From positions 248,001-312,000 of IMG/VR virus record IMGVR_UViG_3300031576_000001: a stretch of 64,000 nucleotides of DNA; one strand, given 5' to 3'. A program made the position numbers and the translations under genes. This document shows positions 7,589-25,960 of the stretch, in pieces. Numbering within the stretch: the stretch's first letter is position 1; each line of letters opens with the position of its first letter. The notes under the pieces are model-generated. The model was not told the DNA's origin and did not search any database. It saw only the letters and a program-made list of their open reading frames with translations.

Positions 7589-7631
7589 AGAGGGTCTAAG
7601 TCTAAACCGTAGAACAGAAAGGGCTACAGTC

Positions 7632-10600
7632 TTGGCCAGGCTCGCGTCAAAAGCACTCGGGGGTTTTTACAAAACGCCCACCCACCTTGTCCCTCTCATC
7701 GCGGGCAAGATCGCCCTCCCTTCGCTGGACAGGACGGCCAGCTACAGCCTCATGGACCCTTGCGCTGGCAAGGGTGAGGCTGTCTCGCTACTCTGGTCCA
7801 CGCTGGTTGGTGGCAACACGGTGAGCGGACCCAAGGTCAGCTTGTACCTCTGTGAAATGGAGCGGGTACGCGCCGCAGAGGCTAAGCAAGCGGGCCAGTC
7901 CGTGGGAGCTAACTACCGCGCCAGCGTCTACCTCCACGGTGACGCTTTCAGGTCGAACTACACCCGGAGCGACAAAGAGGGAGTCTCTCTCCTCTACCTC
8001 AACCCTCCCTATGACACGGACCCCGTGATGGGTAGGCTAGAGGAGAGGTTCCTAGCCAGGTTCACGGGCGCGCTCTGTGTGGGCGGGGTGTTGGTCTTCC
8101 TGGTCCCCTTCTACGCGCTGGCGGCTTCCGCCCGGACCCTGGCCACGGAGTACCAAAACCTCTCGTGCTTCGCATTTCCTGAGAAAGACTTCGCGGTGTT
8201 CAAGCAAGTCGTTCTCTTCGCGGAAAAGCGCGAGGCTCCCCTCATGGCACCCGACGCGGGCACACTGGCTCAGGTTGAGTCGTGGTCTCGGGGGGAGTGC
8301 CTGGCTACGCTGGACGCTACCGGGGGCGCGGTTGTCACTGTTCCAGCGGCGGCGTCGTGGTATGGCGCGGCGTTCAAGTGGGAAATGCGTCCTGTGGACC
8401 TGTCTACAATCGCGGGCAAGGTCAAGGGTTGGTCCGCCATGGACCGCCGGGGCGTCATGGCACCCATTGCAGGCTACAACCCTCTCGGTGAGCCCTTGCT
8501 GGACCGCCATTACCCGGTAGCTGTACCCCCCAAGGCGGCTCACATTGCCACGGGGATTGCAGCGGGCGTCTTCAACGGCTGCAAGGTCACCCCTGACCGC
8601 AAAGAGGCGGTGCTACCTACCCTCCTCGTCAAGGGCGCCTTTGACCGGGAGTGGAAGAAGGTTGAGGAGAAGAAAGACAAGAACGGCAACGTCAAGGGGG
8701 TTATCGAGGTACAGCAGCCCCAGCTAAAGGTCACGGTCCTTGACCTCACGACCCACCAATTCGTCACCCTCAAGGCGGGCGAGGAGGGTTCTTGGGAGCA
8801 GGGTTTGCAGGGTATGACCACGGGTGACTTGCTCAGGGAATACGGCGGGGGGCTCATGGGTGCCTTGCTCAAGCAATGCCCCGTCATGCACGATCCTAGC
8901 CGGGAGGGTGACAACTTCACGCTGCCCACCATGGCGCGCGAGCTTTACCCTGCGCAAGCCAGCGCGGCGCGTGCTTGCGTTACCCTCCTCGGGGGGTTGG
9001 GCGTTCCTTACCGCGCTCGCAAGGGCAAGGCTGCTTTTCTCCTGGGGGAGGTGGGTTCAGGGAAATCTATTTGCGCGCTTACCACGATCAAGGCGATTGG
9101 CGCCAAGCGCCCCCTGATTCTCTGCCCGCCTCACTTGCTGGACTCGTGGAAAGAGCAAGTCAAGCTCTCTTGCCCTGATGTTACGGTGGCAGTACTCACG
9201 GACGTGGAGTCTGTTCAAGCGTGGGCTAAGGACACCACCCCCGGGATTGCGCTTCTGTCCAGGGAAACCGCCAAGCTCTCTCATGGGTACGAGGGTCTTA
9301 CCGGGACGTGCCCGGGTTGTGGGGCGGTCATCCCAACCTCTGCGGAAGATAACGTCAAGAAACGCTTGTGCTGCACGGCGCGCACCGTGAAACCCAGGGA
9401 AGCCGTCACCCATGAGGCACACAAGCTAGCGCTCATCCTGTCCAAGTACGTGCCAGAAAACGAGACAGTCAACCAGATCCTCGGCGGGCGCGTCTTGCAA
9501 CGCTACCTCCTGGGTAAGAAAGAGAAGCCCGCGGACAAAGCCGGTTTGCACCAAGAGGGGGGGCTGCTTAGCCTGTTCGTCTGGCTAGGCGCCAGGCTCG
9601 ACGACGCCAAATACCACCGTCCCTTTGCGCTGGTGGCTTCCTGGGTCAAGGACCGTGATGCGCTGGGTAAGGCTATCTTCTGGGCTTACCTGGAGAGCTA
9701 CGCTCGCGACAGCGGAAGCTACGGGCATGAGGCTGATCTGCGCGGTATCCTGCGGGGCTGCTTGGTTTTTGTTCCGGGCTACCAAGCGATTGCCTCTGAG
9801 CTAGCTACACACTGCCCCGAGTCGCGTGGGTACGGCGCTCTAATCTCGGTGTGGACGACTTGGCTTGAGGAGGTGGAGTCCCAAGAAAACGGAGAGGGCG
9901 ATACGGGATACAGGCGCTCGGAATGGCAGAAAACCAGCGAGGGCTGGGTCTACAACAAGATCCTGCTTGGCACGGCGGCTTGCCTGACCACCACGCTCGA
10001 AATCCTGGCTCAGGCTGGCAAGTGGTCAATCAAGGAAGGGTGCGGGGAGCGTCTGTACCAGGCGGCCGCCTCACCTAAGAGGTATCCTCTGGCTACCCTG
10101 ATCTCTCGTAAGTACCCTCGCGCGTTTGACTTTCTGATCTGTGATGAGGCGCACGAAAATAACTCGGAGGTGGCTGCCCAAGCCAAAGCGGCGCACCGTC
10201 TCATGGGTTTGGGCCACCCGACGCTGTGTCTCACGGGTAGTGTGATGAATGGTTACGCCCGTAGCCTCTTCGCTAACCTCTGGCAAGTCAACCCTTCCTT
10301 TCGTGCGGAGTTTGACCGGGACGAGGCTCAGGCGTTCGTTGACCGGTACGGCTACCGCAAGCGGCTTGTCGAGGATCGCGACAAAGACACCAAAGAGGTT
10401 GTGGAGTACGGCTCCATGTCCGACCGGGTTGAGTGCCGGGAGAAGATGCTGGGCGAGACCCCCGGTGTGCTCCCCCTCTTGGTGCTGAAGCACTTGCTTA
10501 GGTGCAGCGTGACGTTGCACAAGGCGGACCTCCAGGTGCATATACCCCCCTGCAAGGAAGAGCGAGTCATGGTCCAGCCCTCCCCGGAGCAAGCCAGCAA

Positions 10601-11438
10601 CCTCCTCTACTTGCAGGGTCGGCTGATTGACCAGATCAGGGCGGATATGTTCGACCCGGGGAGGGCTGGCAAGCTGTGGGGGCAGCTTAGCGAGCTTCCC
10701 TCCTACCTGGACCGCGCCACGCGGGACGTGGGTAAGAGCCCCGGGCGCCAGACCTACGACATAACCTACCCGGAGTCCATGGATTACGAGCTAGTGGCTA
10801 GCGTTGACGCGCTCCCCACGTCCACCGTGCTCCCCAAGGAAACCTGGCTCCTTGATACGGTCGAGAAAGAGCTAGCCGAAGGGCGTAACGTGATGGTCTT
10901 TGCCTGGCACGTTGACCTCTTGCCCCGGCTGCAACGGCTCTTGCAGGACAAGCTAGGCGAGGTTGTGCCTGTGCTCAACCCGGACAAGGTGACCACGGGC
11001 AAGCGCCAGGCGTGGATTGAGAAGGAAGTCACCAAGAAGAACCGCAGGGTGCTCATCGTCAACCCCGTTGCGGTTCAGACGGGTCTCAATAGCCTCACGC
11101 ATTTCTCGACCGTGGTTTGGTTTGAGAACCCCGCTTGTAACCCCGTCGTCTACCGCCAGGCTAACGGGCGGATCGACCGTATCGGTCAAACCAAGGCTAC
11201 CCGGGTTCTCTTCCCCGTGTACGACATGACCCTTTGCAGCGCTCTCCACAAGCTCTTGCTTCACAAGGTGGCGGTCTCGCTGGCTACGGACGGCTTGGAT
11301 AACGAGGCTACCCTGGCAGCGGCGGGTCTGGGCGAGTCTACGGGGCTCACGGGTCTCTCGGTCGGTAAGCAGCTTTATGACATCATCACCAACAAGGTCA
11401 GGCTGCGCGGGCAGGACGAGAAATACGACTTGTGCTAA
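7632..11438 (+). CDS. DNA methyltransferase-like (DUF6094-type) domain fused to an SNF2/SF2 helicase
   Basis: GFYKTP, MDPCAGKG (SAM motif I), LNPPY (amino-MTase motif IV), GEVGSGKS (Walker A), ICDEAH, LTGS, QTGLN, QANGRIDRIGQ. Confidence 0.85.
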   Translation: MARLASKALGGFYKTPTHLVPLIAGKIALPSLDRTASYSLMDPCAGKGEAVSLLWSTLVGGNTVSGPKVSLYLCEMERVRAAEAKQAGQSVGANYRASVYLHGDAFRSNYTRSDKEGVSLLYLNPPYDTDPVMGRLEERFLARFTGALCVGGVLVFLVPFYALAASARTLATEYQNLSCFAFPEKDFAVFKQVVLFAEKREAPLMAPDAGTLAQVESWSRGECLATLDATGGAVVTVPAAASWYGAAFKWEMRPVDLSTIAGKVKGWSAMDRRGVMAPIAGYNPLGEPLLDRHYPVAVPPKAAHIATGIAAGVFNGCKVTPDRKEAVLPTLLVKGAFDREWKKVEEKKDKNGNVKGVIEVQQPQLKVTVLDLTTHQFVTLKAGEEGSWEQGLQGMTTGDLLREYGGGLMGALLKQCPVMHDPSREGDNFTLPTMARELYPAQASAARACVTLLGGLGVPYRARKGKAAFLLGEVGSGKSICALTTIKAIGAKRPLILCPPHLLDSWKEQVKLSCPDVTVAVLTDVESVQAWAKDTTPGIALLSRETAKLSHGYEGLTGTCPGCGAVIPTSAEDNVKKRLCCTARTVKPREAVTHEAHKLALILSKYVPENETVNQILGGRVLQRYLLGKKEKPADKAGLHQEGGLLSLFVWLGARLDDAKYHRPFALVASWVKDRDALGKAIFWAYLESYARDSGSYGHEADLRGILRGCLVFVPGYQAIASELATHCPESRGYGALISVWTTWLEEVESQENGEGDTGYRRSEWQKTSEGWVYNKILLGTAACLTTTLEILAQAGKWSIKEGCGERLYQAAASPKRYPLATLISRKYPRAFDFLICDEAHENNSEVAAQAKAAHRLMGLGHPTLCLTGSVMNGYARSLFANLWQVNPSFRAEFDRDEAQAFVDRYGYRKRLVEDRDKDTKEVVEYGSMSDRVECREKMLGETPGVLPLLVLKHLLRCSVTLHKADLQVHIPPCKEERVMVQPSPEQASNLLYLQGRLIDQIRADMFDPGRAGKLWGQLSELPSYLDRATRDVGKSPGRQTYDITYPESMDYELVASVDALPTSTVLPKETWLLDTVEKELAEGRNVMVFAWHVDLLPRLQRLLQDKLGEVVPVLNPDKVTTGKRQAWIEKEVTKKNRRVLIVNPVAVQTGLNSLTHFSTVVWFENPACNPVVYRQANGRIDRIGQTKATRVLFPVYDMTLCSALHKLLLHKVAVSLATDGLDNEATLAAAGLGESTGLTGLSVGKQLYDIITNKVRLRGQDEKYDLC

Positions 11439-11477
11439 GAGGGAGGGGCGGCAATCAATACCCAAGGCACAAGCACC

Positions 11478-11795
11478 ATGATAAAAACCGGTAGCCCCCT
11501 CTTCAACGCTGTAACTCAAAGGCTCTCCCCCGAGGTTTGGGCTCGCAAGGTCGCCTGGCTCACTCAGGAAGAGATCACAGAGAGAGGACGCCTGGAGGGC
11601 GAAAGTTTGCTCGCCGCGGGGCGCCTCTTGCAAAGGGAAGAACGCCCCCTGGGCGAGTCCTCTTGGCACTTGAGCGGTACGCCCACCAACGTCACGGACC
11701 TTTGTGAGCGATTGGTTCAGTGGACCTGTCAACCCCTCCCCAGTTTGCGTACAGAATACGCTGTCAAGTCTGCCAGCGCCGAGGACTTGACGTTA
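11478..11795 (+). CDS. Hypothetical protein; ends at TTA 11793-11795
   Basis: TTA end removes the overlap with the convergent gene. Confidence 0.55.
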
Positions 11796-11836
11796 GCTCG
11801 TGCTGAGAAGCTGGTTCCCTCTCCCCTCTCAGGGGG

Positions 11837-13042
11837 TAACCAGCTTGCGCGGGCCTTGACCTGAGCATCTAGCCCACTGTCCGCGATGAACTTCAAACAA
11901 GCAAGGTGCGCGGCATGGTCTGCCCAGTCGCTTGACTGTGGACCGATGGGGTAGGAGGGTTGCCAGTGCATCCTTAGCCGGTGCAAGCTCTCCGTGAAAG
12001 CAGCGAACTCTCCCATGACCCGGATGTGACGCTTCTTGAACCTGCCCTTGTCATGTAGAAGCGAGAGGTGCTTCCCCACGCCCACCTGAAACGGCAGCGT
12101 GCGGACAAGGATCTCGCCTACCGCTGTGTTGCCCGACGTGTAGCTGAAGATGTCAAAGAAATCCAAAGGCTGGGGGCGCTCTTTGAGCATCTTGAAGTGC
12201 TGCTCGACCTCGGCGGCGTAGGTTTGGGCTTGCTCGTCCCAGTCTTTCAGGTGCGAGAGGTTCACCATGATACGCCACACGTCCTCACGGATCATGGCAG
12301 ACTGAACCTGTAGCTTGCGTGACTTCCCTACGGGCGGTGTCGCGGCAGTGTCCTCTACGGTCGAGAAGACGCGCAGAACAGGGTGACCGTGGTTCTCTGC
12401 TTCGCCCGTGATGACACAGGGGTACCGCAGAGAGACCACCGGGGCGACACAAGCCAACTGTCGAGCAACCTCAGCTTGGTCATAAGAGACCCACCGGACC
12501 CGGCACTCGTTGGCGCCCGCGCGAGTCACGGCAAAGCCTGCCGCCTCACCCCCATTGTAAAGGGGGTACGTAGAGAGGAGTTTTTCGAGGCGGCGCCTTG
12601 TGACGACGCCGGGGGGGAGCTTATCTTTAGCGCCGGTAAGCTCCTGGGTGCGCTGGGCTAGCCTCTTGGCGGCACGCTCAAAGCCAGCGTCATGGACCCT
12701 TACGCGCCCTTCCCAGAGGGTTTCCATGAACTGCTCAAAGGTCCAGGTCTTCTTGGCGGGGGGGTCGTGGTACTTGTTTGGACCCCACCCCCTCTCAACC
12801 AGATCCAGCTTGAAGCCTTCAAGCCAGGTCTCGCAGACAATGGCATCCCCGGGGTGAATGTCCTCGATCCTCCCGTAACCGTTGTACTTTGCCTGGATAG
12901 GGGGGGTGCGAGGGAACCACAGCCCGTTAGCCTCACGGGGGCGTGCCCTGTAGGGGTTCTGGGTGAGAAGCAACACCATCACAGGGTCGCCTCCGTGGAT
13001 GGGGAGCCCGCTGGCGGCGCACGGCATGGAGAAAGATCCCAT
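11837..13042 (-). CDS. Hypothetical phage protein; ends at TTA 11839-11837
   Basis: Starts MGSFSMPCAASGLPI..GD, has YNGYG motif; GGTGTA 11 nt upstream. Confidence 0.7.
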
Positions 13043-13068
13043 GGACGCAACAGTACACCAAGATTCTC

Positions 13069-13094
13069 GTGAACTCCAGAACCAGCACAACGTA
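13069..13094 (+). promoter_or_regulatory. ECF-sigma-like promoter
   Basis: GTGAAC-N16-CGTA-AGAGGGGTT-ATG. Confidence 0.7.
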
Positions 13095-13103
13095 AGAGGG
13101 GTT

Positions 13104-13313
13104 ATGAACACCACGATCTACGTTACGCACTACCACAAGGAGTGCAGGGTGACTCGCAACAAGTGGTCCATCGACCCATACCGCTGGGTCGATGGACCAC
13201 TTTGACCCCTACCAGACCGGGGGCACTTCGTGTTCACCCGCACGGCGGACGGGCGCCTGTGGTGCATGGTCACGGACAAGGAAACCCGGGACGCCGTGCT
13301 GGCGACCCGCTGA
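13104..13313 (+). pseudogene. Frameshifted paralog of 13393..13605
   Basis: TRNKWSID / FVFTRTADGRLW (two frames) versus TQTKWSTD / FTFTCTADGTVW. Confidence 0.55.
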
Positions 13314-13318
13314 GAGGG

Positions 13319-13353
13319 TTCCCTAGCCAGGGGGGCACACGCTGGCTAGGGAA
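13319..13353 (+). terminator. Stem-loop, likely terminator
   Basis: TTCCCTAGCCAG...CTGGCTAGGGAA perfect 12 bp stem between two cassettes. Confidence 0.6.
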
Positions 13354-13357
13354 AGTC

Positions 13358-13383
13358 GTGAATCCTGAGAGAGCCTCAGCGTA
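13358..13383 (+). promoter_or_regulatory. ECF-sigma-like promoter
   Basis: GTGAAT-N16-CGTA-AGAGAGGTT-ATG. Confidence 0.7.
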
Positions 13384-13392
13384 AGAGAGGTT

Positions 13393-13605
13393 ATGAAACC
13401 CATCGAAACCACCTACGCCGGCAAGAAGTACCTCATCACCCAGACCAAGTGGTCTACGGACATTATGGTCTGGGTGGAGTCTGAGGTGAACCCCTACGCC
13501 TCGGGGGGCTCTTTCACGTTCACCTGTACCGCGGACGGTACGGTGTGGGTCAAGGTCTCCGACCCGGCGCTGTACGAAAAGGTCATGGCCCGCGCCGGCT
13601 TCTGA
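13393..13605 (+). CDS. Small hypothetical (probably early) protein
   Basis: 70 aa ORF after the promoter motif. Confidence 0.65.
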   Translation: MKPIETTYAGKKYLITQTKWSTDIMVWVESEVNPYASGGSFTFTCTADGTVWVKVSDPALYEKVMARAGF

Positions 13606-13610
13606 CGGAC

Positions 13611-14345
13611 TAAGACCGGCTGACGGAGAACACGGAGCACGCCTTGGTGTGAGATGAGCTTGGCTAGCTTAGGGTCTCTCAGCACGTCGTGAAGGTGCGT
13701 AGCCACGCCGTTGACCTCGCACCACAGGGAGACGAGGATTACGGTCTGACTGTAATCTGTATGCTTGCGCCCGTGGCGGAAGCCTCTTCCTTGGATGAGC
13801 CGTAGGTACTGCTTGGTTTTCGGGTCTTTGACCAGGGAGGCAATCGCCTCACCCTTCATTCCGAGGTAGCTCAGCCCCTCAAAGTGCCAGCCGTAGTTTA
13901 CAGCGTCCTCCGCAGAGCCTACTTTTAGCTCGTTGTCGATGAGCCAGTGCTTGCCCACGGTAGACACGATAGTGCCCAGAGGGAGGTCAGCGGGCAGCAA
14001 GGCGTCAATCTTGCGACTGTGCTCGATCATGGCCTCCGTGGACGAGGTTATGGCTCTGTTTCTGGGGGGGAGAGTGTAGCCCCGGTTGAGCCAGATAAGG
14101 TCTGCCAGCTTGGCGGTAAGCAGGGAGCACTCTAGCGCGTCGGCTATCCTCTGTTGCAGAGAGGCGCTGGCGTTGACCCGCACCCCGTTGACTTTCAGGG
14201 CGTCAGCGTAGACCCACACGGTAAGCTCGGTCCCTGTGTCCTTGTCTTGCACGTAGAGGGGGGCTAGGGTGGCTTCATACCTCCCGGCTCGTACCTCAGC
14301 CAGGATGTAATCCTCTCGTGCTTGCAGTGTACTTGGAAAACCCAT
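13611..14345 (-). CDS. Conserved-looking hypothetical protein; ends at TTA 13613-13611
   Basis: GKHW, NYGWH and HTDYSQ motifs; TTA end abuts the convergent gene instead of overlapping it. Confidence 0.65.
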
Positions 14346-14817
14346 GAGCCCAACAGAGTCAGTCATAAAGCACCCTACCAATAGGCAGGCAAAAGAGCTT
14401 CTTAGCGGGGCTACCGTCACCACGGTCAGCGGCACGAACCCCCTCACCTTGACGCTATCGAGGGGAGGTCTGAGTTACAGTGTCACGGTAGGCAACCTGA
14501 CCAACCTGAGCAAGCTGAAGAGTACGCCGGACCCAGAGAGGGTTTTTTATGCCTCTCTGGGCTTCTTGTTGACCAGTAGCAGCCTACACGCGGTTCTGAC
14601 CGAGCCTGAGAGCGTGTTGGTCTTCGTGGTGTCTGCGACGCACTTTGGGTGGAAAGACAAGGCCAGCGGGCGAGCCTGGCTTATCAAGGCAGAAAGGTGT
14701 GGTCAGTGGTGGAAGCTGACCAGAACAGCCCCGGGGCGCAAGGTACTAAAGCAGGCGCTACGCCAGGGGGAGGGGTGGGAAGCCTTCTTGAAGGCGCACC
14801 AGCCTGAAAAGGTGTAA
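14344..14817 (+). CDS. Hypothetical protein
   Basis: ORF; start uncertain. Confidence 0.45.
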   Translation: MSPTESVIKHPTNRQAKELLSGATVTTVSGTNPLTLTLSRGGLSYSVTVGNLTNLSKLKSTPDPERVFYASLGFLLTSSSLHAVLTEPESVLVFVVSATHFGWKDKASGRAWLIKAERCGQWWKLTRTAPGRKVLKQALRQGEGWEAFLKAHQPEKV

Positions 14818-15367
14818 GCTCTCTTGGTGACACCAACTGAGCCCAATGTACTGACGAAGGAGCGCACGCTAACGCTGGGCAGGGACGTGACCACAGAGAG
14901 CACGTTCGAGATTGTTAGCGAAGAGGCACCCCTAGTGGGGGAGACGTACAAGGTGTTTGGTGACACTGTAATTGTCACCCACGTAGCAAAGGGCCCACCA
15001 GCGCTCAGGAACCCGCCCCCCTCCTTTCCCTGTGTGGCTTGTCCGTCTACGGGCACCCTACCGCGGGCTCCTGTTGACAGGGGCAGTGTTGGAAAAGATC
15101 CCGCCGAAGAGGTACGAGCACCTGGCAAGGGTTCTCTGTCAAAAGGGCAGCAAGCCCGCCGAAGAGCCTGACGTGGGTTCATGGTGGACCACGCCAGACA
15201 CAAAGACCGCGGAGGGGTGTACCGTTACCTCCCTGGTGCTCACCCTTGTCAAGGTGTTTCCTCGCGAGGGGGGCAAGGATTACTGGGAAGTCATCGTCAG
15301 TAGTTCCTCCGCAGTACCGCCCCCGCGAGCGGGTTTCCTTGTCTCCCTGGCTCAGGGCTGAAACCCT

Positions 15368-15928
15368 ATGGCTCTACTTTCCGTTGTGCTCCCCCCTGAC
15401 GTTGCCAGGCTCCTTTCCACCCTAGACGTGCCCGGGGAACGTGCCTCGGATCATCACGTAACCTTGGTGTATCCGGGTAAGACATTGCCATTTGAGGCGA
15501 GCCTGGCTTACATAGGGGCAACCAACAAGGCGCTCTCCGGGCTGAAACCCTTCACGGTCACGGTGAACGCTGTAGGTACTTTTGCGGCCAAGGACGGCAA
15601 GGTGCCAGTGGTCGCCAAGGTCGAGGGCGAGGCTTTGCATGACCTGAGAGAGCGCCTGGTCAAGGCGCTAGACGAGGCTAGTGTGGAGTATGACACCACC
15701 TACAAGGACTATAGGCCCCACGTCACCCTGGCGTTTGCTGAGGCAAAGGACGTAGGATTCATGCAGACCCTACCCTCTCCGGTGACGTGGGGTGTATCCG
15801 AGGTAGCTTTCTGGGGAGGCAGTGAGGGCGCCAGCGGTATCCAGGTGACGTTTCCCTTGCTCTTGGCGAAGAGGGTGGCGTCTAACTACCTGCGCAGAGG
15901 GGCAAGGTATCCAGTACAACGCGGCTAG
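15368..15928 (+). CDS. 2H phosphoesterase (LigT/Acb1-like)
   Basis: Two HxT motifs: HHVTLVY and PHVTLAF. Confidence 0.85.
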   Translation: MALLSVVLPPDVARLLSTLDVPGERASDHHVTLVYPGKTLPFEASLAYIGATNKALSGLKPFTVTVNAVGTFAAKDGKVPVVAKVEGEALHDLRERLVKALDEASVEYDTTYKDYRPHVTLAFAEAKDVGFMQTLPSPVTWGVSEVAFWGGSEGASGIQVTFPLLLAKRVASNYLRRGARYPVQRG

Positions 15929-16436
15929 GGGGGTTGCGCTTCTTGCTGAACGCTGCAGGGTCCACGGTCAGCGCACGCTTGCGAGATACCCTGTAGACCC
16001 CGGACTCGTCTGGCACGTTTATCCAGCCGTGCTCCAAGGCAAACGCTACGGCAGCGTCAAAACTCTCTCGGGTGTAATCGTTTCCACGGACCTTGTTCCA
16101 CCACGCCTCACGGGGAAGAGGCAGGTAGATGAACAGGTCAGAGACGTACTGCGACCATTCTTCACATTTCGGAGCTACCGCCTGCCAAGTCACCTCTTCG
16201 CTGAGCAAGGGTACCCACCCAATCTCCTTGCCTGCCGTGCCTACCAGCCTCATGTTTTCGAGCCAAGCCACGGTCTGACGGAAACCGTCATCGGTCAGGT
16301 GTGTCTGCCTCTGCGCTAGCGCCCACCATGGCTTGTACAGAAGAGGCACCATCGACTCCCGTAGAATGTCCAGCACGGGGAGTGCCTTGATAAGCCAGAA
16401 CGGTGAGCCATCGGGGGGGTGCCTAGAGACTTCCAT
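15882..16436 (-). CDS. Hypothetical protein
   Basis: GAGG RBS; 184 aa. Confidence 0.55.
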   Translation of the reverse strand: MEVSRHPPDGSPFWLIKALPVLDILRESMVPLLYKPWWALAQRQTHLTDDGFRQTVAWLENMRLVGTAGKEIGWVPLLSEEVTWQAVAPKCEEWSQYVSDLFIYLPLPREAWWNKVRGNDYTRESFDAAVAFALEHGWINVPDESGVYRVSRKRALTVDPAAFSKKRNPPSRVVLDTLPLCAGS

Positions 16437-16863
16437 GCCTCTCTTGGTACACCACCGAAGCCAGGGGAGAGGCTAAGTTGTAGTTCTTGGACTTGGAGTC
16501 GCTCTTGGGGGTCACCGTGACCCCCATCTTTTGGTGGTACGCCAGCGCCACGTCCGTAAAGTCGCGTTGGTTGTCTGGGTCTTGGTAACCCAAGAAACCA
16601 TCAAGGAAGTCTGCCGGTACCAGGGAGTCCTCAAAGGGGATCATCCCTACCAGGCTCTCTTGCCAGCCTGCCTTACTGCCCAGGTAGACCTCAATATGCG
16701 CCCAGAGGGCGACAGGGTAGTTGGCGATCCCTAGCTCCCCCTCGACCACGGCGGTGAGAACGGCAGACCACCCTCTTGGCGCTGGCACCGTGGTTATCGT
16801 GCGTACCTCCCCCAGGCTTACCTTCGGTGCCTTCGGGGGCTTGTCCTTCTTCTTTTTACCCAT
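16423..16863 (-). CDS. Hypothetical protein
   Basis: ATG overlaps the TTA of the upstream gene (TTATG). Confidence 0.6.
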   Translation of the reverse strand: MGKKKKDKPPKAPKVSLGEVRTITTVPAPRGWSAVLTAVVEGELGIANYPVALWAHIEVYLGSKAGWQESLVGMIPFEDSLVPADFLDGFLGYQDPDNQRDFTDVALAYHQKMGVTVTPKSDSKSKNYNLASPLASVVYQERHGSL

Positions 16864-17231
16864 AACGCCAGCTTTCCGCCGTGCTTGAAAGCTCTCTTGC
16901 GGTTGACCTCGTGCTTGAGCCGGACAGCCCTGTCCATATCCACCCCGAGGGTCTTGGCCGTGTCCAGCGTGCGAATGAGAATATCCGCTAGCTCCTCCTC
17001 GGCGTTGGTTAGCTCAGGGTTCTTGTCGCAAGGCTCGTACAGCTTGCCCTTGCGCACTACTTCCCAAAGCTCCGAGACCTCGCCGGTCAGGTTGGTCAGG
17101 AAAATGGCCATCCTTTCCACAGAAGGCTTCGTCTGCAAAGCACTCTCGTGGTGAAACCCGTGCTCAAGGGCATTCTGAAACACCACGTCCGCTACAGCGT
17201 TGAAATTCGTCGGGGGTAGGGGCTCACTCAT
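16863..17231 (-). CDS. MazG-like nucleotide pyrophosphohydrolase; ends at TTA 16865-16863
   Basis: GEVSELWE, EEELADILIR and K..VNRKR..KHGGK motifs. Confidence 0.8.
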
Positions 17232-17289
17232 GGCTACGCCTAGCTTACCCCTGCTAGACTTCTTTTGCCAGCGACAAGGGGCAGCACCC

Positions 17290-17565
17290 ATGACTTCACC
17301 CCCTCAAGGTAACGGCAACGGTAAGCACCCCCCAGTAGACACGGCACCCGATAGCCTACCCTCCCCTACTCCTTGGGGTGGCGACGTGGGGCTCATCCAG
17401 GCACACATCGAACGCCTGACCACCCGCGTAGAGGTCAATATTCACATGACCCAAAAGCTCGACCGAGACTTTGCCCACGCGGTAACCGAGCTAAGAGGCG
17501 ACATTGCAGGGATGCAAGTCAAGCTGGCTAAGATTCTTGCAATACTGGAAGCTGGGGCACCGTAA
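17290..17565 (+). CDS. Hypothetical coiled-coil protein
   Basis: ORF with AAGGGG upstream. Confidence 0.5.
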   Translation: MTSPPQGNGNGKHPPVDTAPDSLPSPTPWGGDVGLIQAHIERLTTRVEVNIHMTQKLDRDFAHAVTELRGDIAGMQVKLAKILAILEAGAP

Positions 17566-18331
17566 CCACGCCAGAGAGGAAGGCTTTGCCGTAGTCCGCC
17601 TCTCCGGTGTAGACGTTGAGGGTGGGCGACTCACGGAAGACCCCTGGGGAGTGTGTGTGTCCGCAGTACACGTCAAAGGTGACCGTGGGGTTACGTTTGA
17701 CCTGATCTCGGAGCATCTTACCCATGGCGGCACAGGTCATCCAGGGTAGCCATTGTTCGTCTGACAGCTTACCTTGGTGCCATGTAGCCCCGGAGAAGGG
17801 GGCTACATGGGTGGCGAAGATGACCCTTGTAGCGCCTAGTGTGACTGCCTTGTCAATCTTGGCTTTGGCGCGGGCTACCTCGCGGTCTGCCACGCCCTGG
17901 ATCTTGGCGGTTAGCTCGGCGCCGTGAAGGTACCGAAACTCCCCAATGCGGTGCATGTCGGAGAGCAGGACGTGGCTGGCTCTGATGTTGCCGGCGCGGT
18001 TGTCGTAGAAACCATCTTGCCCGACGAGGTACGTACTCTCTCCGCAGTCTAGAGGGGGCAACGCTGAGAGGTAGCCCAGGGTTGAGACTCGCTTCTGAAA
18101 GCCGTCTACCGAGGGTGCGTTGTAGAAGTCGTGGTTGCCCAGCACGAAGAAGATGGCCCTGCCGGTGCGCCTGGTTAGCCCTTCCAAAGCCTCAGCGACA
18201 GACTCAGACTGTGCAATGTCCCCCGTGATGAGCACCCCATCGTACTCTTGTAGTGCGCTGCAAAGAGCCGAGTAAGCGGGTGCTGAGAGAAAGGGGACGT
18301 GGGGGTCCGTAACCCAAGCAAGGCGTATCAT
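17528..18331 (-). CDS. Calcineurin-like metallophosphoesterase (CpdA/Icc-like)
   Basis: TDPH, TGDI, GNHD, TH and GHTH motifs. Confidence 0.88.
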   Translation of the reverse strand: MIRLAWVTDPHVPFLSAPAYSALCSALQEYDGVLITGDIAQSESVAEALEGLTRRTGRAIFFVLGNHDFYNAPSVDGFQKRVSTLGYLSALPPLDCGESTYLVGQDGFYDNRAGNIRASHVLLSDMHRIGEFRYLHGAELTAKIQGVADREVARAKAKIDKAVTLGATRVIFATHVAPFSGATWHQGKLSDEQWLPWMTCAAMGKMLRDQVKRNPTVTFDVYCGHTHSPGVFRESPTLNVYTGEADYGKAFLSGVVTVPQLPVLQES

Positions 18332-18353
18332 GTCGCGGCTAGTTTACACCGCC

Positions 18354-18686
18354 TAACAAGGCGGGCAAATTAGCGTCGCGCTTTTCCGCTGTGACGAGGA
18401 GGGCGCAAGCAAGCACATGCTTGCACTTGTTACCCCTGCGAAAGTCCTCGCAGGTACAGGTGGACGTGTTGCCTGTGACCTTGACCACGTAGGTTTGTTT
18501 CTCGCTGGGAACATTATACACCCCGTTCCCCTGTGGCTCGATGTCGCCCGTGAAAGCCAGTGCTTTATTGAGTCGCTCTTTCCACTTGGGGTTCTTTGCA
18601 CCCCATGCGTCGGCTAGCGCCCTCATGGTCTGGTAGGTAGCGGCGGCTTGTTTACGGCGGACAATGCGGTCGTGTAGGTCAGACAT
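18354..18686 (-). CDS. SWIM zinc-finger protein; ends at TTA 18356-18354
   Basis: CTCEDF....CKH. Confidence 0.8.
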
Positions 18687-18707
18687 GCTCTCACATTACC
18701 CCCTAGA

Positions 18708-18911
18708 TAAGCGCATGTGTGTTGCGGTGTCACTCGCGCTTACCCCGTGCATCCCCCTGAACATCCGGGCTACCTCGTCGGCTAGCCTGACACCTTCCGC
18801 CAAGGGGCGGTTCATTTCCTCTACGCTCAACCTCTCGTAGTGGCACTGGTGAGGGTGCTCGGTAGGGCGTAGCTCTGGGGCTCTCTTAAAGGAGGGGGGC
18901 GGGGTCGGCAT
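18708..18911 (-). CDS. Small hypothetical protein; ends at TTA
   Basis: MPTPPPSF ORF. Confidence 0.4.
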
Positions 18912-19005
18912 GTCGGTCTTTGTGGTGCAGAGCTTACAATAGCCCAAATTCGAGTGAACTGAGAGGACAACCGTGGGTAAGAGTAGTGTAGAGGTGAAAA
19001 GTACG

Positions 19006-19269
19006 ATGAACGCGAAAATGACCCCCACCGAGAGGGGACACTTGGCAATTTGCGGGTACAGGGTTGAACAAGCCCTGGGCTTGGTTGTACCCCCACTCCC
19101 CCTGCCTTCCTGCGAGGTGCCCCTTGTCCACCTTGGGCTGGCGGCGGCGTTGTGGGAGGGCGAGGTTGTCTTCAGTACTGAAGAGGGCATACCCGCCTAT
19201 CGACCCTCCTCGGGGTTTCTTGACGCCCTGACCCTCTGTCTGGCACGTATCGCGAAGACGTGTCATTAA
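19006..19269 (+). CDS. Hypothetical protein
   Basis: GAGGTG upstream; same direction as 19279. Confidence 0.5.
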   Translation: MNAKMTPTERGHLAICGYRVEQALGLVVPPLPLPSCEVPLVHLGLAAALWEGEVVFSTEEGIPAYRPSSGFLDALTLCLARIAKTCH

Positions 19270-19278
19270 GCACCGAGG

Positions 19279-21882
19279 ATGGCATCACCCCCAGTAAAAG
19301 GCTGGTCTATGTGGGAAACCGTGGGAACCCTGGACCCCAACAAGGCTGTTTTGTTCCCAAAACAGAAAGCTACCCCCATGGTGCAACCGCTCGAAGGGGG
19401 CGCGCTCCCTATTTACGACCGTGACCCGGTAACCGAGGTCAGGGAGTATCCTGTGGAAGGAGCTAGCGCGGGGACGGTTAGCTCCCACGGTGCGCTGCAA
19501 GCGCAGATCGCCGTGACCCGCGAGAAGCGTGCGACGGCACAGAGCGAGGAGGGTGCTGCGCTCACGGAAGAGGGTGCCTTCAAGGCTTTTGACGACATGG
19601 TAAAGGAAGCGCTGGGCGACGACGCACCGTACCAAGAGGGGGTTGATTCTCTGTGTGATTCAAAGGACCAGGCTACCTTTGCTTCGTTGGACGAGCTAGA
19701 ACGCCAAGTCACTATGCCCCCAGAGGCGACAGCGCAGATTCACGCCGAGGAGGACCGTAGGTTCCTTGACACCGTGAACCAAATGGCAAGCGGGGTTGAG
19801 GGTACACACGCTTCCCTCCCTGCGACCGACCTACCTCTCAGCGCATTGCTGTCAAAGCGCTTGGTGGGTTTCATTGCTACTGCGACAGACACAAGCCCCG
19901 GTCTGCCGGCGTCAGGCGCTTGCACAGAGGCGCCCAGGACAGTGGCACTTTGGGCACAAACCCGAGAAAGAATGAAAATGTCGGAGACCGGAGACCCCAC
20001 TGCACGCGCAGAAATGGAGGCTTTTGACACCCTGATAGCAGAGTCCTTGACTGGCCCGGACACAACCACGGTTACCGCGTCTGAGCCATTGTCAGAACAA
20101 GCACGGGCAGATAGACAACTTGCGTTTGAGCAAGCCAAAGCCAAGCTCTTGGAAGAACCCCCCACGGTAAGCCAGCGCACAGTTATTGAGGGAAAAAAGC
20201 GCAAAGAGCGCCTTGAGACTCAAATCCGCCAGCTACGAGCTGAGCTAAACAAGCTGCGCGAGAAGGCAGGGTTGCCCAGGATAGGGTTGTGGGGCTACAC
20301 CACGGAACCGAGAGTGTATGACGACGAGACTACCGTGCTCCCCAAAGTAGCCCAGCGTGAGGACGCTATGACTCTCCGCGCACAACAGTCGGATGACAAG
20401 CTGTCCGAGGAGCAAAAGCTAGACGAGATAACGGACATTCTGAACGGCACCAAGGCGCAACTACAGGTAAAAGAGGCAGTGGACCAGGACACCGTAGCCC
20501 CCTATGACCCGGACACCTTCGTACCCCGACAAGAGCTAGGCGGGGAGGGTGCGCCCCAAGAGGTACGCACTGCCTTGCAAACCCTCCTTCAAGCTCGGAC
20601 CACCCAGGCTCTCCGTGCGCAAGGTGTGAGGTACAACACCATAGAGGAGCGACAGGTTATGGCGGACGCCACGCTCAAGGTGTTGCAAGGCTTCGCAGCC
20701 CAGAACCCCGTGGAGTACGCCAACTACGCGCTAGCCCAACTCAAAGAGGGCACCGTGGTCGAGGGTACCCACAAGGACAGTGCTGTACACCCCACGGACA
20801 GTGCCCAAGAGGAAGCACTACAACCTCTAAGCGAAAGAGGTGCAATGGGGCAGTGGCAGAGGCAACCCCTACGTGTACCACAGAAACTCAGAGCCAGGCT
20901 GGTTTTCACAGAGACCATGCTGGACAGCATCCCTGTGACGCCGGACGCCCTGCGTCTCAGTGACAGTAGAGAGCTTGGGGCGATTGCGGGGGCGCTGGGG
21001 GTCAAGTGTGACTCATGGTCAGAGCTGTCCCTATCCCTACGGAGAGGTATCGTGACCAAGGCACTACAAGACCGCGCAGGTAAGATGAGCCGGGACAAGG
21101 TAAGCATGGCGGTAGCCCCGGAGGCGATCCCGCCCGCGTTCTTGGAAAACCTACCGCCGACGAGCATCCTGATCTCGCTGAGCGACCCCCTCTTGGAGGC
21201 GTTGGCACGTAACTTTGGGGTGTGGGAGAGTTCATCGTGGTCGATGATGAACAAGAAGGAGAAGGCTGCACTCATCGAATGGGCTGAGCTTTCTACAGAA
21301 ATCGGTGAGGGTGAAGCCCCCCCCGAGGGGTCTTTGGGTGTAACAGATGAGCAGGACAGCCAAAAGGAGCGTAGCATCATGAGCGGTGTGGTTGACACGG
21401 TGAAGGCGGCAGGGGCGACCCTAGCCAAGGACAGCCAAGACGCCTCCTGGCGCGCGGCGGCAAAACAACTGACCAAGTTGGTCAGGGAGCCCCTTGTGGC
21501 GCTCCTGCACCGCAACCTCGGACCCAGCGACCCCTCTCTTCGGGTCAAGATTGCTGAGTTTCTGGATACCGAGATGGGCTCCATCGTGGTCACCAGCCTC
21601 CTTGCGACGGGGGCTACCCTGGTACCGATGCCGGCGCCCATGCAGGCTCAGGTTGTCCGGCTGGCGCAAGAGCTTCGTGTCAAGGCAATGGCAGACGGTA
21701 TGGACCTCACGGCTGACGTGGTGATGGGTCCGTTGCGGGCTGTCATAAGCACCTACTTGCAAGGGATGCCCGCAGAGGCGGCTGAGCTAGAGACCGAGAC
21801 AGCACCGGTCCAGATTCCCTCTGCCAGCATCAGTGACCACCAAGGCGTGGACAACCGTATCGGGGTCTCCGTCAAGGGTTAG
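19279..21882 (+). CDS. Large acidic/coiled-coil hypothetical protein
   Basis: 867 aa ORF; internal AAGGAG-ATG near 21379 may start a C-terminal product. Confidence 0.7.
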   Translation: MASPPVKGWSMWETVGTLDPNKAVLFPKQKATPMVQPLEGGALPIYDRDPVTEVREYPVEGASAGTVSSHGALQAQIAVTREKRATAQSEEGAALTEEGAFKAFDDMVKEALGDDAPYQEGVDSLCDSKDQATFASLDELERQVTMPPEATAQIHAEEDRRFLDTVNQMASGVEGTHASLPATDLPLSALLSKRLVGFIATATDTSPGLPASGACTEAPRTVALWAQTRERMKMSETGDPTARAEMEAFDTLIAESLTGPDTTTVTASEPLSEQARADRQLAFEQAKAKLLEEPPTVSQRTVIEGKKRKERLETQIRQLRAELNKLREKAGLPRIGLWGYTTEPRVYDDETTVLPKVAQREDAMTLRAQQSDDKLSEEQKLDEITDILNGTKAQLQVKEAVDQDTVAPYDPDTFVPRQELGGEGAPQEVRTALQTLLQARTTQALRAQGVRYNTIEERQVMADATLKVLQGFAAQNPVEYANYALAQLKEGTVVEGTHKDSAVHPTDSAQEEALQPLSERGAMGQWQRQPLRVPQKLRARLVFTETMLDSIPVTPDALRLSDSRELGAIAGALGVKCDSWSELSLSLRRGIVTKALQDRAGKMSRDKVSMAVAPEAIPPAFLENLPPTSILISLSDPLLEALARNFGVWESSSWSMMNKKEKAALIEWAELSTEIGEGEAPPEGSLGVTDEQDSQKERSIMSGVVDTVKAAGATLAKDSQDASWRAAAKQLTKLVREPLVALLHRNLGPSDPSLRVKIAEFLDTEMGSIVVTSLLATGATLVPMPAPMQAQVVRLAQELRVKAMADGMDLTADVVMGPLRAVISTYLQGMPAEAAELETETAPVQIPSASISDHQGVDNRIGVSVKG

Positions 21883-21901
21883 CCCCTCTGAGGGAAGAGT
21901 C

Positions 21902-21943
21902 TGAAGGCTCGTTGCCCCCCTGAGAGGGGGTGACGGGCTTTCA
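21902..21943 (+). terminator. Rho-independent terminator-like hairpin
   Basis: TGAAGGCTCGTTGCCCCCC..GGGGGTGACGGGCTTTCA followed by TTCGTTT. Confidence 0.65.
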
Positions 21944-21982
21944 TTCGTTTAAGGGCGTTGTTATCCCCGACGATAGGGGAGG

Positions 21983-22615
21983 ATGCCCGAGGTAGAGAGA
22001 CACTCCAGGTGGGAACAGTACCCCAGGAAAGCGGATCTTATCCGTGACCTACGTACTTTCTTCAACCACCTGGAGGACTCGGTAGATCCCGCTCAGGACG
22101 CAAACGCCCTCCTGGCGATAGAATACGACACACTACCCAACGCCACGTTGAAGAGCGTGGCGGGTCTGGGGCTCTACACGTTTGACAGCACGTCGGTAGC
22201 GGTACCTGACGGCTTGAACGTACTTGACACGGGGCTACCCACGGGACGTTGGGTCAAGGTAACCACCGGGGGTGGTCCGGCGTCTAGCTACACGCTGACG
22301 AGCCATGCCTTCTCGTTTGCCTCTGTACCCTTGGCTATCATGCTGCCGTTGCCCATGGGCACCCGAGTAGACGGAGTTACCGTAGAGGTCTCCACCGCCT
22401 TTGACGGCGTGGGCGCTAGCCTCTTGGTAGGTACGCCCACGCTCCCGTCGCTCTACTTTGGAGTGGGCGCAAGTAAACTGAGCGTGGGTGGTGCTTTCTA
22501 CCACAACGATAAGGTTTATACCGCCCCCCTCTCTGAGGCTCTCATCCTGACCCTGGCTACAGCGGGCTCCACCGCAGGTACAGGCGCGGTACACGTTCGC
22601 ACACAAGGCCCGTGA
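21983..22615 (+). CDS. Putative virion structural protein
   Basis: GGAGG RBS; VSTAFDG...VG beta-sandwich pattern; first gene of a tight operon. Confidence 0.6.
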   Translation: MPEVERHSRWEQYPRKADLIRDLRTFFNHLEDSVDPAQDANALLAIEYDTLPNATLKSVAGLGLYTFDSTSVAVPDGLNVLDTGLPTGRWVKVTTGGGPASSYTLTSHAFSFASVPLAIMLPLPMGTRVDGVTVEVSTAFDGVGASLLVGTPTLPSLYFGVGASKLSVGGAFYHNDKVYTAPLSEALILTLATAGSTAGTGAVHVRTQGP

Positions 22616-22624
22616 AAGAAAACA

Positions 22625-23455
22625 ATGGCTAGTTACGAAAACCTAGCAGGTACAACCGAGACCACATTTCAAATTGGTCTGGACCGTCCACAAGTAAAGA
22701 GTACGTCCACAGGCGAGCTAGAAGCTAGAGACGCTACAGACTCGACTTACGCCAGGTTTCGCGTAGGCGCCCCTGTAGGTCCAAACGACGCGATTACCCG
22801 GTCCTATGCAGACACGCTGAGCAAGCCGATCATTGTTTCTGCTCAGTTTGACGGCAACAATGCGCTTCCTGCCAACACCGGAACCCCCAGCTACAAGGTA
22901 GTCACAACCACGGGTGCTTTTGCCAGCATTGGGGACGTGATCTACGATGACGGATCGGGAGTGGGCACTACCACGGTGCTTACGGCAATAGAGGGTCGTG
23001 TACTCGCTATTACGGACGCCCTCTCTGGTGGTACGGTCAGCCTTGACCCGGACAGCATTTACATCTGGGACGCTGACGGTTCTGCCTATGTAAAGATCGG
23101 GGACATTGGCTCCGTAACAGGGGCAAACAGGGTCATCCGATACACCATTACCAACGCTGCGACGCAGGACAGCGTGACTACGATTCCAGCAAGCGCGATT
23201 GTGGGACGCTGTGAGGTGAAGATAACGACCCCCTATTCCGGGGGAGCGTCTATCTCGGTGGGGCGAGCTGGTTCTCTGGCACTCATTATGCCCCCCACGG
23301 GGAACACCCCACAGGGGGCTAGCGGTAACATCTACCGTAGGTTCCAAGACACCGACTGGGGTGGCTCAGCTTTGGTGGTGCGGACTACGATCACAGGTGC
23401 TCCGGCTGCGGGTGCTGGCGTGATTATTGTCCACTACATGACACCCAACGCTTTA
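22625..23455 (+). CDS. Putative virion structural protein; ends at TTA 23453-23455
   Basis: NLAGT.E..FQIG N-terminus shared with the next gene. Confidence 0.6.
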
Positions 23456-23475
23456 GCGTGCTAGTGTGACCCCCC

Positions 23476-23925
23476 GTGGCTGATTTTGATAACCTCTCCG
23501 GCACCAGCGAGTCCAGCTTTCAAGTAGGGCTAGACGGACCTCTTTTGAAGAGGAACGGCACTGCTTTGGAGGTTAGGGATGCTGCGGACACCGTGTTTGC
23601 AACGTTTCGAGTTGCTGACGGCTCAGGGGCGAGTGACGCTTTGTCACGGGGGGCACACGAAGCGTTGGACTCCCTGGTTCATGAGCTAGCAGAAACGAGC
23701 TACGAAGAGGTGACTCGACTAGGAGGGCTGGTTACTGACGTGATTGTGTGGACGGACTCTGGAAAAACCATCAAGGTACGAGAAATGAACCTCACTCGTG
23801 CTAGCGGTAGGGTCTCGGTCATTGTCAGAAAGCAATACAATGCAGGCGTGCTGGTACAAACGATGACTTCAACGATAACCCGGTCGGGCGGTCATGTCGC
23901 TTCGATTGACCATGTGGAGACCTGA
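23476..23925 (+). CDS. Putative virion structural protein
   Basis: NLSGTSESSFQVG, paralogous N-terminus. Confidence 0.55.
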   Translation: MADFDNLSGTSESSFQVGLDGPLLKRNGTALEVRDAADTVFATFRVADGSGASDALSRGAHEALDSLVHELAETSYEEVTRLGGLVTDVIVWTDSGKTIKVREMNLTRASGRVSVIVRKQYNAGVLVQTMTSTITRSGGHVASIDHVET

Positions 23926-23930
23926 AGACA

Positions 23931-25019: not shown

Positions 25020-25960
25020 CCATTCAGATTTCCCCGCAACACACTCAGGTGATTTACGACTGGTCGGGTTTCAAGACCAAGGCAACATCTTTTGGTTTGC
25101 GTCTGCGATACCACCAAGAGGTTAGTACGGTCACGGTTTACTTCTACGACCCGCCCGAGGTTCATTTGTGTTGCCTGGCTCGTGGTGGTGCGGAGGAGGC
25201 TGAGTTTCTGGCGTCTTACTTGCCCCTGATTCAGGATAGCCCTCTCTCAGAGGCTATCCTGACTGCGGTTGTGTCTGGCGAGCTACCTACAGCGGCTACC
25301 GCGCAAGCTGCCGTGCGAAAGACAGCTTACGTTGAGCGTACCTCAGAGGCGCGTAGATCCATCAAGTCTACCTCAGCTCTAGACACCAATGGTGGTACAG
25401 GAGCACGACAGGTTCAGCTCACCTACTATGATGATGCAGGTGACGGCCCATTCACGGAGGTTGTTCTCCTCAACGGGCTCACCGCGGTTGACACTACAGC
25501 TACAAACATTCGCTACCTGGCAAGAATGGAAGTCACGTCCGTAGGCTCCACGGGCACCAACCAGGGCACGATAGAGGTATACAATGGCACGGGGGGTGGT
25601 GCTACGGGCTCTGGCTTTGGGAGCATTGCTGTGGGGGATAATCAAACCCTATGGGCACACCATTACGTGGCAGCGAACCGTGTGTGTTACGTCAATACCG
25701 TAGCGGTCAACTCCTCTTCCGCTACAGCAGCTAACGCCTCAGTCTTTACGCTCAAAGTGAAGACCTTGAACAGTACTTCCCCGGAGGTAGCGTTGGGTGA
25801 CCGTATCCGCCTCATTGGTGCCACTTCACACTTGCAACGTGTGTACGGTAAGACACTGAGGATTCGTGGCCCTGCAAGAATACAAGCCTACGTTCAGCCT
25901 GAAACAATTTCTGCCGTGACCCAACGTGTGAGCTTTGATCTCTATGAGGTAGCGCCATGA
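25016..25960 (+). CDS. Putative virion structural protein (paralog of 23931)
   Basis: Same GTGAR..GPFTE..ATNIRY..DNQT.W.HHYV module; ATGA overlap. Confidence 0.6.
   Translation: MTIQISPQHTQVIYDWSGFKTKATSFGLRLRYHQEVSTVTVYFYDPPEVHLCCLARGGAEEAEFLASYLPLIQDSPLSEAILTAVVSGELPTAATAQAAVRKTAYVERTSEARRSIKSTSALDTNGGTGARQVQLTYYDDAGDGPFTEVVLLNGLTAVDTTATNIRYLARMEVTSVGSTGTNQGTIEVYNGTGGGATGSGFGSIAVGDNQTLWAHHYVAANRVCYVNTVAVNSSSATAANASVFTLKVKTLNSTSPEVALGDRIRLIGATSHLQRVYGKTLRIRGPARIQAYVQPETISAVTQRVSFDLYEVAP

Follow-up and report, generated by a model that had tools for sequence, protein, structure and literature searches.

In the huge phage studied here, recovered from a cave metagenome, the leucine codon TTA is used as a fourth stop codon and ends about 28% of the genes, among them a MazG-like gene and the gene of the major capsid protein. 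No earlier report of an amino-acid codon turned into a stop outside mitochondria and plastids was found. The analyzed window, a stretch of 64,000 nt, corresponds to bases 248001-312000 of a linear contig of 322,633 bp (IMG/VR record IMGVR_UViG_3300031576_000001). The contig has a GC content of 58.6%, is about 68% complete according to CheckV, and carries 39 tRNAs identified by ARAGORN, one more found with Rfam, and a tmRNA. Its major head protein is 84-89% identical to the 80 best of 581 matching IMG/VR stretches, about 50% to that of a Tunturiibacter (Acidobacteriota) jumbo phage and 38% to that of Bacillus phage G; hence, it belongs to a huge phage of an unknown host. The hits of the capsid gene lie in bins assigned to seven unrelated lineages and are therefore not informative on the host; the nearest cultured relative, at 50% identity, infects an acidobacterium.

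The starting point was the end of the MazG-like gene. On the minus strand, the window reads GGC GGA AAG CTG GCG TTA TGG GTA AAA at 16880-16855; this is ...GGKLA, followed by TTA at 16865-16863 and by an ATG sharing the A, which opens the next ORF, MGKKKKDKPPKAPK... The sequence-only reading had reported this TTATG overlap at 16865-16861, and the overlap is present exactly as described. Under the standard bacterial code (table 11), the MazG frame would continue for 14 more codons, WVKRRRTSPRRHRR, and overlap the next gene by 46 nt. The DNA sequence itself is not an assembly slip: an independent assembly (Logan) of the source run (X1) gave a contig of 48,987 nt identical over window positions 14001-20000, with no other letters and no gaps, and a 151-nt unitig from a second run of the same sample (X2) covers 16828-16978 without difference.

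The junction is one case of a genome-wide rule. Genes were predicted with a simple self-trained caller, selecting ORFs by codon-usage log-odds and resolving overlaps greedily, so short genes and start codons are approximate. TTA is the rarest codon (109 of 93,407), and 66 of these 109 lie within 20 codons of the next standard stop, while for every other codon this share is 4.5-11% (binomial p = 1.7e-35, even against 11%). No other sense codon stands out, the next highest being CCA with 11%. Outside the last 40 codons, TTA occurs 25 times in frame, against 707 and 511 times in the other two frames; inside the last 40 codons, the three frames are equal (84, 80 and 77), as expected if the sequence after the first TTA is no longer coding in that frame (Fisher p = 5e-50). 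When TTA is added to the stop codons, the number of genes rises from 321 to 353, the coverage from 0.860 to 0.884 and the summed coding score from 16,235 to 17,247. The 353 genes then end in TGA (150), TTA (100), TAA (53) and TAG (50). Removing TAG, TAA or TGA from the stops lowers all three values; hence, a reading of any of these as a sense codon was rejected. After a TTA, the in-frame open length (median 10.5 codons), the coding score and the distance to the next start resemble those after TAA, TAG and TGA. In the 24 ORFs with a TTA far from their end, this TTA lies in a 5' leader just before a start codon or separates two well-scoring ORFs, with a start 1-16 codons after it. Regarding the nucleotide following TTA, A is rare (3%), but TTAA is depleted genome-wide (5%), and G is moderately enriched (46% against 26%); no extended signal was found.

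Comparison with homologs places the gene ends at the same positions. The sequence-only reading had named homologs with LWVKRRR-like tails as the observation that would speak against it, and homologs ending shortly after HGGK as the one to look for. Of 75 MazG homologs found, the 23 that were aligned all end at HGGK plus two residues, exactly before the TTA, and none has such a tail. Two whole-genome relatives with about 45% protein identity were also examined: G001 (529 kb, 63.9% GC) and G002 (200 kb, 51% GC), both using the standard code. In G001, the nearest whole-genome relative, the MazG ortholog reads ...LLHGGKLA-TAG-ATG. In total, 27 TTA-ended genes have G001 orthologs whose ends coincide within two residues, with the alignment reaching both ends, and 19 of these have table-11 tails of 10 codons or more. 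The G001 stops at these places are TGA (20), TAG (6) and TAA (1). Apparent exceptions were hits to the next gene or a second alignment segment that ends at the TTA, and long ORFs split by an internal TTA are separate ORFs, in different frames, in G001. One gene is ambiguous: at genome positions 101066-101941, the G001 ortholog runs 20 residues past the TTA position, without real similarity. The major capsid protein gene ends in ...VITRA-TTA, where 79 of 80 related phages have a standard stop.

Among 45,508 codons of called genes aligned to called proteins of the relatives, TTA occurs only once, at an alignment end. TAA, TAG and TGA occur 2, 2 and 4 times, at alignment edges, whereas CTA occurs 747 times, TTG 754 times and CAT, the rarest true sense codon, 116 times. 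This comparison was restricted to called genes, as conserved antisense ORFs spoiled a first version. Scans of the large proteins against Pfam and PHROGs gave little, because the phage is very divergent, and the fragments related to its helicase (loci L004-L006) carried no informative neighboring genes. As controls, the same method was applied to G001 (15 in-frame TTAs, none near an end), G002 (284, spread evenly) and 48 related IMG/VR loci, and no terminal excess of TTA was found. G001, in which TTA has almost vanished (0.1 per 1000), shows what a forerunner could look like.

A second phage shows the same signature. The capsid gene also hit a 127-kb contig (C4) in a genome bin labelled Lysinibacter sp. 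(G003). This contig and the 205-kb contig C1 of the same bin carry homologs of the genes of the present phage, with a median identity of about 51%. On C4, 26 of 51 in-frame TTAs lie within 20 codons of the stop, and on C1, 43 of 72. Gene calls improve with TTA as a stop, and 53 of 162 genes (C4) and 72 of 247 genes (C1) then end in TTA. At 56 orthologous gene ends aligned to the identical position, 16 are TTA in both phages and 19 more are TTA in one and TAA, TAG or TGA in the other, which is how synonymous stop codons behave. Other contigs of the bin use TTA as a sense codon, and its RF1 (PAT) and RF2 (SPF) are canonical; hence, this bacterium is not shown to be the host, and the bin does not reveal a host with this code. 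Contig C5 of the bin has a weak, unexplained excess of terminal TTA while using TTA internally. The features of the window are listed below.

Features of the 64,000-nt window related to the use of TTA as a stop codon (window coordinates).
Position	Strand	Feature	Observations
16863..16865	-	TTA ending the MazG-like gene; its A (16863) is the first base of the next gene's ATG	23 of 23 aligned homologs end exactly before it; TAG at this position in the G001 ortholog; DNA confirmed by two runs
16866..17231	-	MazG-like NTP pyrophosphohydrolase, 122 aa from the ATG at 17231 (142 aa from an upstream ATG at 17291)	Pfam MazG PF03819, 23.8 bits (cut-off 22); 75 homologs, mostly 107-117 aa, cover 82-83% of the 137-aa table-11 product; acidic columns E51, E54, E57, E78-E80 and D83 invariant across 24 sequences
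16818..16862	-	14 codons (WVKRRRTSPRRHRR) plus TAA (16820-16818) that table 11 would add after the TTA; not part of the protein	No homolog aligns to it; lies inside the next gene, in another frame
16861..16863	-	ATG start of the downstream gene; only ATG, GTG or TTG at the 5' end of that ORF	Ortholog in the second TTA-stop phage begins MPKAKPKVGDVRT, matching PPKAPKVSLGEVRT here; GGAAAG at 16877-16872, 8 nt upstream; GAAAG is 4.7-fold enriched upstream of starts
16474..16863	-	Downstream gene, 129 aa, unknown function, ended by TTA at 16476-16474 (146 aa under table 11)	Four-stop gene call; 46% identical ortholog on contig C1 of G003; no Pfam family
38683..39486	-	267-aa gene ended by TTA at 38685-38683; 15-codon tail under table 11	G001 ortholog (55% identity) ends at the TTA position, 16 residues short of the standard stop
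54964..55359	-	131-aa gene ended by TTA at 54966-54964; 45-codon tail under table 11	G001 ortholog ends at the TTA position, 46 residues short of the standard stop
27342..28223	+	Patatin-like phospholipase, 293 aa, ended by TTA at 28221-28223	Pfam PF01734, E = 4.3e-32; G001 ortholog ends 2 residues before the TTA and 15 before the standard stop
60415..61329	-	ADP-ribosylglycohydrolase, 304 aa, ended by TTA at 60417-60415	Pfam PF03747, E = 1.9e-60; G001 ortholog ends 1 residue before the TTA
1..64000	.	23 of the 81 genes called in the window end in TTA	Minus-strand TTA codons start at 1637, 1871, 5079, 11837, 13611, 16474, 16863, 18354, 18708, 28260, 38683, 53835, 54964, 58217 and 60415; plus-strand TTA codons end at 11795, 23455, 28223, 31734, 37725, 40784, 43995 and 56295 (gene call with TAA, TAG, TGA and TTA as stops)
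59803..59877	-	tRNA with anticodon CUA, the amber-suppressor type; part of the decoding apparatus, role here not known	ARAGORN; Rfam tRNA, 55.5 bits; TAG still behaves as a stop

Evidence independent of any gene calling comes from the tmRNA. Rfam identified a tmRNA inside the tRNA array (genome positions 30256-30633, 52.8 bits), which is not reported by ARAGORN. From the resume codon, the tag frame (12350-12394 of locus L008) reads ANDNVEAAPLALAA and then TTA, the next standard stop being 28 codons further on. The tmRNA of the second phage (84 bits) reads ANDNVEALSLAA and then TTA. A pattern search revealed one more phage contig, the IMG/VR record behind locus L226, with a confirmed tmRNA (60 bits) reading ANDNGVAPFALAA and then TTA. 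In contrast, G001 has ANDNGTVITALKAAA followed by a normal stop. Tags of this type end in ...LAA directly before the stop, and the sequence after the TTA is not alike in the three.

The junction itself is less telling. Genome-wide, 8 of the 100 TTA-ended genes have TTATG, and 7 of those ATGs start a called gene, while about 4.7 are expected from the genome-wide TTAN frequencies (binomial p = 0.10); for comparison, 29 TGA-ended genes use ATGA. Terminator and initiator overlap on one strand, and the downstream ORF is a real gene with a matching N-terminus in its ortholog. This is the same one-base overlap as in TAATG, so the two genes are probably translationally coupled; the geometry fits coupling but does not prove it, and whether translation of the downstream gene depends on termination of the upstream one was not measured. 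The interpretation of the sequence-only reading, that the MazG-like gene ends at TTA and the next gene starts on its last base, is supported. However, the reason it gave for true termination and re-initiation rather than plain stalling, the TTATG geometry, is weak, and a genome-wide count of such junctions, which it had proposed, decides nothing. The tmRNA provides a better argument: the end of the tag frame is where a rescued ribosome must be released, and a rescue RNA whose own frame ended in a stalling codon would defeat itself. This is the best available argument for real termination at UUA, but it is an inference: no protein or RNA data exist (no RNA run was listed), so release at UUA has not been observed, and re-initiation at the ATG was not examined. 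No structure or complex prediction was run, as none would bear on the claim.

Taken together, TTA (UUA) is best explained, with high confidence, as a fourth termination codon and not a leucine codon in this phage. What the sequences demonstrate is that coding ends at TTA genome-wide, that the rule is shared by at least one other phage and probably a third, and that TTA swaps with TAA, TAG and TGA at orthologous gene ends. That UUA has no leucine decoder in the infected cell, and that a class-I release factor with widened specificity frees the peptide, is inferred. The latter has been proposed for organelles reading UUA as stop, where RF2 (at Ser204) or RF1-type factors carry changes in the codon-reading region (PMC12574857). 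Such a factor would come from the host or from the roughly 32% of the phage genome that is not in the contig. The mechanism is not shown. No release factor (PF00472, PF03462) or peptidyl-tRNA hydrolase (PF01195) domain was found in this contig, in G001 or on the two phage contigs of G003, so no factor can be named, and the codon-recognition region of a host factor was not examined, as the host is unknown. Of 36 genes shared only by the two TTA-stop phages, 20 were scanned, and none is a translation factor.

The tRNA array carries tRNA-Leu with anticodons GAG, UAG, CAG and CAA but not UAA. A tRNA with anticodon UAA is present in both standard-code relatives, and the G002 copy is an 86-nt long-arm type. 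As the contig is incomplete, the missing tRNA-Leu(UAA) may sit in the unseen part, and the tRNAs of the host are unknown, so these observations leave undecided whether the cognate tRNA has been lost. Moreover, the second phage carries a well-formed tRNA with anticodon UAA (76 nt, G73, CCA), which, if charged, would read UUA. It does not look like a leucine tRNA, having a short variable loop and G73, where the Leu tRNAs compared with it have A at the discriminator position. It would then be a suppressor of the new stop, which parallels the suppressor-type tRNAs with anticodon CUA (here and in G002) and UUA (G001).

Three other explanations were considered. The best of them, although unlikely, is that UUA is an unassigned, 'hungry' codon, read by no tRNA and recognized by no release factor, at which ribosomes stall and the peptide is freed by rescue systems (tmRNA, ArfA/ArfB-like factors) or by drop-off. 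The lack of tRNA-Leu(UAA) among the 40 tRNAs seen, the fact that no release-factor gene was found in either phage and the presence of a tmRNA agree with this view, and unassigned codons that halt translation without release have been described in Micrococcus luteus. However, about 28% of the genes, including that of the major capsid protein, would then depend on a rescue path that normally tags proteins for degradation, and rescue would stall again on the tag frame of the rescuer. Furthermore, rescue factors act on ribosomes with an empty mRNA channel, which is not the case at an internal codon followed by the next gene, and TTA and standard stops interchange freely at orthologous ends, as equivalent signals would.

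An artefact or a change at the RNA level, in which the true codon is TAA, either misread as TTA because of, for example, a modified base or created by editing of UUA to UAA in the mRNA, is very unlikely. Huge phages often modify their DNA, and no RNA data were available. However, two libraries and an independent assembly give the same letters, and the signature recurs in a separate assembly and in the tmRNA of a third contig. Off-frame TTAs are plentiful and unaffected, while a sequencer cannot know the reading frame, and true TAA stops coexist with TTA ends. Editing cannot be excluded, but it would need about 100 site-specific U-to-A changes, a kind not known in phages. Finally, that TTA is an ordinary but very rare leucine codon, as table 11, with open frames through every TTA, the public 137-aa call of the MazG product and the GC content of about 59%, at which TTA is expected to be uncommon, might suggest, is strongly disfavored, as CTA (15 per 1000) and TTG (16.5 per 1000) are common against 0.3 per 1000 for TTA in gene bodies, TTA piles up roughly 22-fold in the last 40 codons, the tails are unconserved, up to 100 or more codons long and run into the next genes, orthologs stop exactly at the TTA, only one TTA occurs among the 45,508 aligned codons, and the tmRNA tags would lose their ...LAA ends.

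The closest systems are found in organelles: the mitochondria of labyrinthuleans/Thraustochytrium (NCBI table 23), the plastids of dinoflagellates with pedinophyte-derived plastids (UUA and UCA), and the mitochondria of Marsupiomonadales and Pseudoscourfieldia (UUA and UUG) (PMC12574857). There, the same codon acquires the same new meaning, a large share of genes use it, and the evidence is of the same kind: the codon is absent inside genes and present exactly where homologs have stops. These are, however, small organelle genomes, each with a matching change in an organellar release factor, while the present system is a phage of a prokaryote with more than 300 kb of sequence and about 40 tRNAs of its own, in which no release factor has been identified. 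The plastid case was described as the first sense-to-stop change outside mitochondria (PMC12574857), and literature searches found no such report for bacteria or phages. Lak megaphages and crAss-like phages, in which TAG or TGA is read as an amino acid, are likewise large phages with many tRNAs, including suppressor-type tRNAs, whose code departs from table 11, but the direction is opposite: here, a sense codon becomes a stop, and TAG, TAA and TGA all still behave as stops. In Streptomyces (bldA tRNA; proposed phage bypassing, PMC10732093), and in high-GC bacteria with unassigned codons, UUA is also depleted and its decoding depends on one dispensable tRNA. There, UUA is still leucine and sits inside genes as a regulatory pause, whereas here it is absent from gene interiors, apart from the few cases given above, and marks gene ends.

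Whether the host natively has this code or the phage imposes it is a further question. A possible, but doubtful, reading is that the phage removes or outcompetes the UUA-reading tRNA-Leu of the host during infection and supplies, or retargets, a release activity for UUA. Every host or rival-phage message containing UUA would then be cut short, while the phage's own genes are written without internal UUA and use it as a stop; this would be recoding used as host shut-off and as a barrier to other phages. The alternative, also unreported, is that the host belongs to a bacterial lineage that natively uses four stop codons.

The use of TTA as a stop has practical consequences. Standard gene callers give about 28% of the proteins of this phage false tails, as in the public MazG product, and miss or shorten the overlapped downstream genes. 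Codetta, the tool used for large code surveys, cannot detect such changes by design (PMC9825746), and ARAGORN misses the tmRNAs concerned, whereas the end of the tmRNA tag offers a quick way to screen genomes for new stop codons. All code changes so far described in bacteria and phages turn a stop into a sense codon or one sense codon into another, and the change of an amino-acid codon into a stop has been documented only in mitochondria and, in 2025, in one group of plastids (PMC12574857). A phage lineage with UUA as a stop means that either a bacterial-type translation system with many genes can make this change or a virus can impose it; either way, a release activity for UUA awaits discovery.

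A phage-encoded tmRNA is located inside the tRNA array, outside the window. It is missed by ARAGORN, probably because its tag frame, which encodes the tag ANDNVEAAPLALAA, is closed by TTA and not by a standard stop. ARAGORN also misses a tRNA-Thr(UGU) that was detected with Rfam. In this array, as well as in the tRNA arrays of the two whole-genome relatives, G001 and G002, and of G003 (the genome bin that holds the second TTA-stop phage), many of the phage "Leu" tRNAs are only 74-78 nt long and have a short variable loop. They share a D-arm (GTAGCCCAAC.GGCAGAGGC) and sit beside ordinary long-arm Leu tRNAs, which is unusual for bacterial-type tRNA-Leu. Directly upstream of the tRNA/tmRNA array, a TROVE-domain (Ro60-like) protein is encoded, which is shared with the second TTA-stop phage but not with G001 or G002. 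Elsewhere in the genome, a UvrD-type helicase of 1602 aa is interrupted by an intein with a LAGLIDADG homing-endonuclease domain.

Locations of the additional features in the phage, its relative G002 and the bin G003 (L numbers denote individual sequence stretches)
Feature	Stretch and coordinates	Strand	Genome coordinates
tmRNA	L008:12256-12633	+	30256-30633
tRNA-Thr(UGU)	L008:12730-12800
tRNA array with short "Leu" tRNAs	L008		21-31 kb
TROVE-domain protein	L008:1542-3098	+	19542-21101
UvrD-type helicase with intein	L013:11964-16769	+	119964-124772
First table-11 ORF split by TTA	window 40296-41984	+
Second table-11 ORF split by TTA	window 1637-2479	-
tRNA with anticodon CUA	window 59803-59877	-
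Truncated RF1-like protein, relative G002	L062:1438-2037	-
Contig C5 of G003	L168, L169, L179-L182

Within the window, two table-11 ORFs, of 562 and 299 aa, are really two genes each, split by an in-frame TTA with a start 1-2 codons later. The radical-SAM-like second half of the first ORF matches a 388-codon ORF, bounded by standard stops, in the second phage. Over the whole genome, the tetranucleotide TTAA is strongly depleted, representing 5% of all TTAN, against 16-53% for the other three. C5 is a 116-kb contig of the G003 bin, in the first 40 kb of which no homologs of this phage's genes are present. This contig uses TTA inside genes (2.9 per 1000), and yet, 21% of its in-frame TTAs lie within 20 codons of the stop, about twice the expected share; this excess is unexplained.

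Upstream of the gene starts, the most enriched motifs within 20 nt are, genome-wide, GGTGTA/GTGTA (about 6.5-fold) and GTAAG/GAAAG, ahead of AGGAG (4.5-fold). Only 29% of the genes have a classical GGAG, GAGG or AGGA motif.

The window also contains a well-formed tRNA with anticodon CUA, of the amber-suppressor type, with a short variable loop and A73, although TAG behaves as a normal stop in about 50 genes. The relatives carry unrelated suppressor-type tRNAs: the anticodon is UUA in G001 and CUA in G002, while the second TTA-stop phage has UAA with G73. Each of the four phages has one tRNA aimed at one of its stop codons. Furthermore, G002 encodes a truncated RF1-like protein of 199 aa, consisting of the end of the PCRF domain plus the GGQ domain, in which the codon-reading tripeptide is PPN in place of P-x-T. 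As G002 still uses TTA as a sense codon, this protein is not the UUA factor, but huge phages of this group can carry altered release factors.
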